A DNA stretch of 63,721 bases, counting the filler, from Reticulomyxa filosa (lineage: Eukaryota; Protista; Foraminifera): NCBI GenBank assembly GCA_000512085.1. It is 17 parts of 17 records of this genome, joined end to end, with 100 filler letters (N's around TTAATTAATTAA, not from the genome) between each part and the next. Parts side by side here need not be neighbours in the genome. Positions count along the whole stretch, not along the records: positions 37,854 to 38,892 come from ASPP01028420.1; 16 more parts are not named here. One strand, 5' to 3'. Both the position numbers and the translations under genes were made by a program. Below the pieces are notes generated by a model. That model was not told where the DNA came from and made no database searches. It saw only the letters and a list, made by a program, of their open reading frames with translations. Below are positions 36,101 to 39,039 of this stretch, piece by piece. How positions within the stretch are numbered: the stretch's first letter is position 1; every line of letters begins with the position of its first letter.

Positions 36101-38384
36101 NNNNNNNNNNNNNNNNNNNNNNNNNNNNNNNNNNNNNNNNNNNNTTAATTAATTAANNNNNNNNNNNNNNNNNNNNNNNNNNNNNNNNNNNNNNNNNNNN
36201 AGTTTGAGAGTGTCGACTTTGTTCAGTTTCCCTTTTAGTTTGCTCGGCCATGTCGTTAATGTTTAGGAAGTTTTTTTAAGTTTAATTTTTTTTAAAAAAG
36301 GGGCTGTGACCTAACCCTTTTTGAAAAACAAAATATTTTACATTGGCATTTTTTATTTGGTTAAACATAATTTGGACAATGAAAATTAAAATGCATGAAA
36401 GGTTAAATTATTTGTATCGAGAACTTTAATGAAAAAATAATATAATTGTTACGTGGCAGTCTGAAATGAAAGTATCAAAAACATGGATGTTGTACCTTTC
36501 TTTTTGAAATTAGTGATTAAGAATCTTGAAATGTTTATAGTCTTTGCCACGTTAAGACTTACAAACAAGTTCTTTTTTAGTGAAATTTAAAAAAAAAGAG
36601 AGTTCTATGAATTTTATCCTGCTTATAAATGATTGGAGTTTTTAATGATGTTTTTCACTAGTTTTTTTTGTCCTAAAACTTTTTTGTAAAGTTATGCAAC
36701 TTGTAATCTCTGTCCAATCAACATTTTACAAAAAAAATAAATGATTACGTATGTGACTCGTACCTCCATAGATCGTTTATAGGTTTTTTTATGAACCAAA
36801 CAAATCGGATTAAATTATGTTTCTTTCAACAAAGTTGTACTCCTACATTCCAATGCATTCAAGAAACATTGCATATTTGTCATTCTTTGGAGGAATATGC
36901 AAAAACAATTTGAAAACGTTAGAATAGTATTTTTAAAAAATTAAAACACATTCATTTTTTTTTCTGCATTTGGGAAAATATCAACTTTTTGACATATCAA
37001 CAAAATTACTTGTGATAATAGATCCTTAGAACAATGATTTTAAATTATAAAAATGTATACAGTTGAAGTCAGTTCAAAACTGATGTTACAAGCAAAATCT
37101 CTTTTTTAAACAAAGGAGCCAAAATTAAATTTAAAAGAATTGAGACAAATACATTCTCCTTGTAATATACATATATTCGCATGTTATTTGAAACCTAAAA
37201 TTATCTAAAAAGTTGACGATGAAGGAGCAAAAAAAAGTTAGCCAATTTTGACTCAAATCCAAATATTATAATTTAATCAAAAAGAACATTTGCAGTTGAG
37301 CACTAATACGGACGGCACGTTGGGAGTAAAGGCCCTGTTTGGGAGGTATGCTTGGTGTGCGTTTGGTATGTTTTGTGAGGGAGTGGAGCTATGCATACGT
37401 AAATGAAAGAAATAGTGTGATGATATTGGGTGATCGATTTGAAGTCGAATTGGAAGAAAAAATAAGTAAAATCAGTGGACATAATAATGAGTTATTAGTG
37501 GTGAAAGTGTAGTGCGAGAAAGATAAGTGAGTGGAGGTCGTTATTTCAATAAGGGCAATGGCGTGGTACTTGCGAAGTCGAATGAAATAATGGTGTGCCT
37601 GGTGAAAGACCTGATCGATAAATATCACAAAGAGCTGGATGGAACAGGCAAGGACAATCGCATCGGAATGGGAACACACAAACTCAAAGTATGCAAGCTA
37701 CTACAACAATATGAACAGCAAGCAAACGGGCATGAAAATAACAGAATTGAAATNNNNNNNNNNNNNNNNNNNNNNNNNNNNNNNNNNNNNNNNNNNNTTA
37801 ATTAATTAANNNNNNNNNNNNNNNNNNNNNNNNNNNNNNNNNNNNNNNNNNNNCTTAAACTTGGTGTTCAACACATCATTGATTTTTTTTATGAATGAAA
37901 ATTTGTTTAATTTTGTCACTTTGTTTTCAGGTTAGAAATTATTGAAACACAATTACTGAAATGCTAAAGATTATTTGAATTGAAAGAGTAAGACAATAAA
38001 AAAAGTTGAACTGAATGTTTTTTTCCCTTTTCCCGAAACCGTTCGTTTGGTTTTTTGGTCCGGCGTCAGTGGTGGAGAGCTTAATCCTGATATCTAGTGC
38101 CGCCTTCGTTTGAAAAAGTTAAATAGGCACATTTTCTTTTCTTTTTTGAAGATTGAAAGTTTGGAGTCTAAAACATTACTACAAATAACAATAGGCGGCG
38201 ACGAGTTATTTATTGGAGATCGCAGTTGTGGATTCGTAATCGTGTCGATCGTGTGTCGTGTCGTGTCGTGTCGTATCATATCATGTCGTTGTGATTGTGG
38301 ATGGATAATGGGATTATAAAGTTGGATTATTTTGCTGCAGATTGTGGTCTATGATGGTGGTATTGATAGTCGTTTTTGGTGGTG

Positions 38385-38724
38385 GGTTCCAGCAAATAAG
38401 GAGCCAGTCAGCCGCTAGCGCATGAATGCGCTAATTATGCGATGTATCATCGCAAAGATGCGTGCAACGGGCGCGTCGGTAGATAGCAGCAAACCAAGGT
38501 CACTGTTTGCTTGATTGCATCACCGACATTTGAGAGCTTGCAGGACTGGTATGGTAGTGTCCATCTGAGGATGGACATTAAAAATAACGTTCCTCCCCCC
38601 TCCCTTGGTGTTACAGGCCAGTGATGGTCGTGTCAACACAAGGTGAAGAGAGGACATACCATAACATGAAATGCGCCCATCCGGCTGACGACGGTCGTTT
38701 TGCGATATTACTCCGTATTCGCAA
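38385..38724 (+). ncRNA. Putative large structured RNA element, family unknown
   Basis: About ten mutually nested helices in ORF-free, GC-elevated DNA, with G-U pairs and a GUGA (GNRA) tetraloop on the plus strand; see findings. Confidence 0.55.
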
Positions 38725-39039
38725 GTTATTTTCTATTTAATCAATGTTCATTTTTTCATAATACTAAATTACTTGCGTGTTTTGTTTAAACAGATTTCGT
38801 TTGATTATGGATGGATCTGTGGAATTGATTGGTGTGGGATGTATTGACCCAGTTGCAATTTTATCCAGTTATTTATTATTGTTATTATTATTNNNNNNNN
38901 NNNNNNNNNNNNNNNNNNNNNNNNNNNNNNNNNNNNTTAATTAATTAANNNNNNNNNNNNNNNNNNNNNNNNNNNNNNNNNNNNNNNNNNNNAACAACAA
39001 ATTAAAAGATGACAAAATATTTAAAAGTTTTAAGTTAGC

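Follow-up and report, generated by a model that had tools for sequence, protein, structure and literature searches.

A statistically exceptional predicted RNA fold without an Rfam family in a short contig of the foraminiferan Reticulomyxa filosa

Introduction

What kind of molecule, if any, is specified by a GC-rich island of ~300 nt that gives a multi-branched predicted fold inside AT-rich, apparently non-coding DNA? The question is raised by record ASPP01028420.1 of the Reticulomyxa filosa genome (GenBank assembly GCA_000512085.1). The record supplies positions 37854–38892 of the window, a stretch of 63,721 nt (filler included) in which 17 parts of 17 records of this genome are joined end to end, and the scope of our analysis is this piece only. 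All coordinates are those of the window. An earlier note had read positions 38385–38724 as a nested RNA structure that could not be assigned to any family.

Among RNAs this large and this ordered, most are ribozymes or form the cores of essential RNPs (RNase P/MRP, telomerase, SRP, 7SK), and in many eukaryotic lineages several of these have yet to be identified. If transcribed and conserved, the element would represent a large, highly ordered RNA without family assignment. Its present status is that of a strong structure prediction from a single sequence.

Results and Discussion

Folding energy and extent of the structure

The minimum free energy (MFE) of 38385–38724 on the plus strand is −129 kcal/mol (RNAfold). 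Comparison with dinucleotide-shuffled controls, which the earlier note had proposed as a check on its reading, places this value far outside the shuffled distribution (−98.8 ± 5.3 kcal/mol; z = −5.66), with 0 of 100 shuffles as good. The minus strand of the same segment reaches −130.4 kcal/mol (z −6.36, RNAfold), an energy that is again matched by none of 100 shuffles. Domain D, the three-way junction within the fold, gives −47.3 kcal/mol by itself (z −4.6). When the energy is followed in sliding 120-nt windows, z turns negative only within ~38334–38693, the flanks staying at z >= 0. The fold signal at ~38380–38700 is the island itself, with 48–54% GC against 23–40% in its surroundings. Structural RNA genes of AT-rich genomes usually stand out in this way, as GC islands between AT-rich, poorly folding flanks.

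The partition function of the plus strand provides a greater level of detail. The nested architecture proposed earlier is recovered by RNAfold with pair probabilities of 0.93–0.99 for the main helices, and a scripted check found each of the seven helices named in that proposal to be an exact reverse complement at its coordinates (7/7). The layout of the plus-strand MFE is nested and includes the long arm capped by GUGA as well as both flanking hairpins (Table 1). The nested structure is thus confirmed as an observation and lies well beyond chance; it and its statistical significance are what the calculations give directly. Among the unpaired segments of the fold we found no credible pairing that would form a pseudoknot.

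Table 1. Predicted structural features of the element and its flanking repeat (window coordinates; p, probability)
Feature	Positions	Strand	Description
H0, 5′ flanking hairpin	38385–38405	+	6 bp including one U-G; 9-nt loop
P1, closing helix, 8 bp	38407–38414 with 38682–38689	+	exact complement; p 0.98
Hairpin HA	38416–38433	+	7 perfect bp; UGAA tetraloop; p 0.94
Hairpin HB region	38438–38466	+	two mutually exclusive folds
P2, second closing helix	38469–38474 with 38673–38678	+	p 0.95
Arm C, irregular hairpin	38475–38527	+	6+3+3+6+2 bp; p 0.81–0.99
J1, junction, 19 nt	38528–38546	+	mostly unpaired; p 0.4–0.99
Domain D, three-way junction	38547–38661	+	7-bp stem 38547–53/38655–61
Hairpin D1 in domain D	38555–38580	+	11 bp; UGAG loop
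Long arm D2 in domain D	38591–38654	+	C-rich internal loop 38596–38600; GUGA tetraloop 38621–38624
J2, junction, 11 nt	38662–38672	+	unpaired; p 0.72–0.99
3′ strands of P2 (38673–78) and P1 (38682–89)	38673–38689	+	pairing and exact complement
T4 run	38698–38701	+	8 nt after P1; could be a Pol III stop
3′ flanking hairpin	38700–38724	+	RNAfold MFE
Direct repeat, left copy	38282–38306	.	24-nt, imperfect; partner 38793–38816
Direct repeat, right copy	38793–38816	.	24-nt, imperfect

At least eight independent and mutually compatible helices, each with its own complement, are packed into the one GC island. The weakest of the predicted helices is H0, with a mean pair probability of 0.62. The arms of HA (38416–23/38426–33) are exact reverse complements, as is the core of D1 (38558–65/38570–77). 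P2 is stacked directly onto arm C, which is interrupted by single-A bulges and by a 5-nt bulge on its 3′ side (38511–15), while its outermost strands (38475–80/38522–27) form an exact complement. The hairpin loops read UGAA, UAU or an 8-nt loop, GUCA, UGAG and GUGA, and two of the helices (UGAA, GUGA) therefore carry tetraloops of known stable types. A single inverted duplication at the DNA level is an unlikely source of this arrangement, because it would yield one long hairpin rather than many helices. The many independent helices instead argue for selection at the level of RNA, or of a single strand, over a simple DNA palindrome.

Coding potential and flanking sequence

Open reading frames reach at most 69 aa in the piece and at most 45 aa inside the element. 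The longest open frame running across the element, of 70 aa, found no credible protein relatives in an exhaustive phmmer search of 1.84 billion representatives. Its two weak matches (E 1.6e-5 and 6.7e-4), both to long multi-stretch proteins, were judged spurious. Exact look-up of four ORFs in the collection searched likewise gave no match. At the right edge of the piece, a plus-strand frame opened by the ATG at 38808 exits through (TTA)n, which is read as poly-Leu, and on the minus strand seven codons are followed by a stop (N6-K-stop). Either of these right-edge frames (38808–38892) may belong to the terminus of a genuine gene or may be no more than low-complexity sequence. An AATAAA is present on the minus strand at 38213–08, downstream of the structure on that strand.

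The element is set in a G/T-rich region of strong GC skew. A G/T-rich stretch at 38204–38403 shows a GC skew of up to +0.64; a (TCGTG)n microsatellite of ~10 copies occupies 38240–38289, and a TTGTGGAT-like motif recurs at 38226, 38295, 38340 and 38805. The two copies of the 24-nt direct repeat differ by 2 mismatches and 1 indel and bracket a 486-bp unit (38307–38792) that holds the structure. The repeat scores 31 against 18.9 ± 2.3 in shuffles, i.e., 5 sd above them. A second, smaller GC-rich patch further upstream (38055–38110) contains a string resembling a tRNA D-arm or A box, GGCGTCAGTGGTGGAGAGC. No tRNA is predicted in this patch, and the fold of 38030–38112 is no better than that of shuffles (z −0.2 and +0.5).

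Searches for relatives

The search of Rfam that the earlier note had called for returned no relevant match in Rfam 15, either with the whole piece at E <= 1 or over 38370–38710 at E <= 10. The only matches stay far below their family thresholds: Ysr197 scores 16.5 bits, in the flank, versus a gathering score of 167 bits, and SNORA13 scores 13.8 bits (E 8.5) versus 53. ARAGORN predicts 0 tRNA or tmRNA genes. Exact 21–34-mers taken from four parts of the element have no match in viral contigs, nor do such 21–34-mers match any of the metagenome and prokaryotic genome contigs scanned. Neither phages nor plasmids are matched by the whole piece in blastn, and a full-text search with 15–16-mers brought up one unrelated primer match only. 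The collections searched are mostly prokaryotic, viral and metagenomic, and missing matches in them do not mean that no relatives exist. Judged from these searches, the element may be called novel in the limited sense of belonging to no Rfam family.

Strand and Pol III signals

The earlier note had also used G-U pairs as an argument for the plus strand. The counts do not bear this out, as 6 of 109 pairs are G-U in the plus-strand MFE and 10 of 109 in that of the minus strand. Mirroring either strand's helices onto the opposite strand costs ~7–8 kcal/mol. Because both strands fold equally well, this strand argument is not supported, whereas the structure that the earlier note described is real, statistically exceptional and without an Rfam family. 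Locally, the evidence is divided: the G-U pairs at 38387–403 and 38617–628 favour the plus strand, and the polypurine/polypyrimidine part of D2 favours the minus strand. Hardly any G-U pairs or mismatches interrupt the core helices. In an RNA gene of great age more G-U pairs would be expected, and their scarcity would suit a young element or a constraint acting on both strands.

The distribution of T runs offers a further comparison of the two strands. On the plus strand, no T4 run occurs between the T5 at 38373–77 and the T4 at 38698–701, while the minus strand has an internal T5 (38580–84 in plus-strand coordinates). This pattern resembles that of a Pol III transcription unit, in which internal T4 runs are avoided, a T run ends the transcript and a TATA box is expected at about −30. 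Lack of a T4 run inside the element is not significant, as 56% of composition-matched shuffles also have no T4 run (P = 0.56), and T4 runs are common in the flanks of the element. No TATA-like box was seen by eye at −30 from the structure; the nearest one (38313–20) is ~70 nt upstream and separated from the structure by a T5 run. A dictyostelid affinity, prompted by the poly-Asn-like (AAT)n edge and an A-G(1–8) telomere repeat, was dropped: the DUSE ([AT]CCCA[AT]AA, PMC3188802) is absent, its only near matches having 1 mismatch and lying on the minus strand, and the GC content of the flanks is too high. On balance, we mildly prefer the plus strand, an orientation that we infer.

Comparison with known RNA classes

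RNase P/MRP RNA was examined in detail because the order of helices on the plus strand matches it. Read in that direction only, the element presents P1, P2, a hairpin, a junction, a branched domain, a second junction, P2′ and P1′. Its length of ~300 nt is also similar, J2 leads straight back into P2′ and P1′, and D2, with its helix-internal loop-helix build and pyrimidine-rich loop, resembles the eukaryotic P3. Such a helix order is generic and insufficient alone for membership. A hallmark of RNase P/MRP RNAs is the CR-I motif GNAANNUC(NGNG) directly 3′ of P3. The plus strand has no match to GNAANNUC, and the two matches on the minus strand are not in the required position. P4 is a pseudoknot that joins the junction after P3 to the junction before P2′. 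For P4, which carries a conserved 'GAA' in RNase P (PMC2996960), no complement of at least 5 bp exists between J1 (38528–46) and J2 (38662–72); by eye, at most AUUU/AAAU can be paired. RNase MRP is further characterized by a GARAR pentaloop on P8, a 3-bp P5 adjoining CR-I and a 6-nt CR-IV (PMC13184271). In the element, the GARAR pentaloop is absent from all hairpin loops, and a CR-IV of 6 or 8 nt is absent at the right place. The element differs additionally in having no CR-V, in having no CR-II or CR-III where these belong and in carrying two extra hairpins between P1 and P2. The RNase P/MRP-like topology hence fails on CR-I and P4.

The likeness to telomerase RNA of the Pol III type (ciliate, plant or Hymenoptera style) is of a different kind. 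It includes the size, a hairpin that is enclosed by a closing stem and leads into a single-stranded linker, and a U run at the end. In addition, a C-rich tract on the 5′ side and internal loop of D2 (38592–38604) shows an exact 7-nt period over 13 nt, or 1.9 repeats, which makes it template-like for an A-G6 repeat. Telomerase RNAs contain a single-stranded template of at least 1.3–1.5 telomere repeats with a pseudoknot on its 3′ side, together with a closing helix and an element that marks the template boundary. The closing stem (38547–53/38655–61) and the upstream hairpin D1 are present, but the search for partners in a pseudoknot or triple helix gave none. Most of the candidate template is engaged in helices, 8 of the 13 nt of the tract being paired with p > 0.9, and the structure contains no canonical telomere template. 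A PSE/USE plus TATA at the correct spacing is also missing.

Other classes were rejected as well. Hammerhead ribozymes are recognized by CUGANGA followed by helix II and GAAA. Two such heptamers occur here, CUGAGGA (38565–71) and CUGACGA (38685–91), both without the adjoining helix II and GAAA, and no self-cleaving ribozyme family gives an Rfam match at E <= 10. For 7SK, the hallmark is a 5′ hairpin with paired GAUC motifs, and no GATC is present within 38340–38730 on either strand. The element has neither the long helix 5 rod nor the helix 8 motif of SRP RNA. A group I intron is countered by the 8-bp clamp of the 5′ and 3′ ends, the fully nested topology and the absence of an Rfam match. SRP RNA and group I introns were both rejected because their architectures are incompatible with a nested, end-clamped fold. 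Motif tests and Rfam together agree with the earlier note that the hallmarks of RNase P/MRP, SRP and hammerhead RNAs are missing.

Interpretation

The island can be best explained if ~38380–38700 specifies all, or one domain, of a stable, structured non-coding RNA that belongs to no class in Rfam and acts as an RNP scaffold; we put the probability of this reading at about 0.45. It presupposes transcription and some function, both of which we infer. In such an RNA, the 8-bp helix P1 would clamp both ends and might shield the molecule from exonucleases. Inside the clamp, two small perfect hairpins and the second closing helix P2 would be arranged. P2 would in turn carry the irregular arm and the three-way-junction domain with its C-rich internal loop and GNRA tetraloop. 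The 19-nt and 11-nt junctions, the C-rich loop and the tetraloops could serve as sites for proteins or tertiary contacts. A bolder form of the same idea is that the element is the founding example of an undescribed ~300-nt class of structured non-coding RNA, possibly catalytic or the telomerase RNA of the lineage, and encoded by a stand-alone gene in an AT-rich eukaryote. We regard this stronger form as unlikely.

Several other explanations have to be weighed against the RNP scaffold. A mobile or repetitive element whose RNA, or single-stranded intermediate, requires such a fold might have the island as its structured body; a SINE-like retroposon, a satellite monomer and a viroid-like retro-element are examples. 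SINEs are known by their many copies, their target-site duplications, Pol III boxes inside the element and a tail that is A-rich or made of simple repeats, and the repeat bracketing the 486-bp unit, so far above its shuffles, could be an old target-site duplication. A branched fold whose stability is the same for both polarities, with nearly pure Watson-Crick core stems, is expected for young or double-sense elements; SINEs and viroid-like RNAs such as retrozymes typically measure ~300–340 nt, and the host contig is very short. If the repeat were such a duplication, since diverged by ~12%, the near-perfect internal helices would even hint, speculatively, at selection on structure. However, the repeat may not be a target-site duplication, because it is located inside the G/T-rich, degenerate TTGTGGAT repeat region, which runs past the supposed boundary. 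Moreover, neither end of the 486-bp unit bears a tail of poly(A) or simple repeats, terminal inverted repeats are absent, and by eye no Pol III A and B boxes occur in the right order. The element also differs from SINEs, satellites and retrozymes in having no hammerhead or other self-cleaving motif, no tandem arrangement in the 1-kb piece and no known copies. An origin in a mobile or repetitive element strikes us as doubtful. We consider it quite improbable that the element belongs to a universal RNA class and has diverged so far that Rfam models miss it, telomerase RNA being a likelier candidate than MRP/P and 7SK the other possibility. The plus-strand topology with its P3-like D2 would agree with this, as would the tract 38592–604: enclosed by a closing stem and situated 3′ of a hairpin, it recalls the core formed by a template and its boundary element. 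Yet CR-I is missing from the plus strand, J1 and J2 offer at most 4–5 A-U pairs and no P4, the template-like tract is mostly paired and 7SK has no GAUC to build on. None of these families gives even a weak Rfam match at E <= 10, although telomerase RNAs are routinely missed by covariance models (PMC9841428, PMC12133305).

Two further explanations were weighed. As a cis-acting structured UTR element (IRES-like, or for stability or localisation) it would serve a flanking protein-coding gene, and either the frame from ATG 38808 on the plus strand or the minus-strand N6-K-stop with its AATAAA would place it in a UTR. A leader of −129 kcal/mol would be unusual for a 5′ UTR, and flanking genes are not established, because the 7 to 28 codons visible lie in low-complexity (TTA)n; we hold a role of this kind to be very unlikely. 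The same low estimate applies to the possibility that the island is non-functional, either a chance formation or a recent DNA-level cluster of palindromes never selected as RNA. The symmetry of the fold between the strands and the derivation of all evidence from a single sequence are in line with it, while the failure of all 100 shuffles to reach the observed energy on either strand, and the confinement of at least eight separate compatible helices to one GC island, speak against it.

Alternative pairing in the HB region

Within the predicted fold, the HB region is where two arrangements compete. The first is a hairpin at 38438–54 (38438–44/38448–54) with seven perfect bp and a triloop, and the second extends over 38438–66 with ten bp, including two U-G pairs. 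Apart from this, 38449–38456 in HB is an 8-bp perfect complement of 38699–38706, the 5′ arm of the 3′ flanking hairpin including the T run. Pairing of these two segments would give a pseudoknot across P1, and ~1 such 8-mer is expected by chance per 340 nt. The GCGAU/AUCGC motif has 5 occurrences across the element and its trailer.
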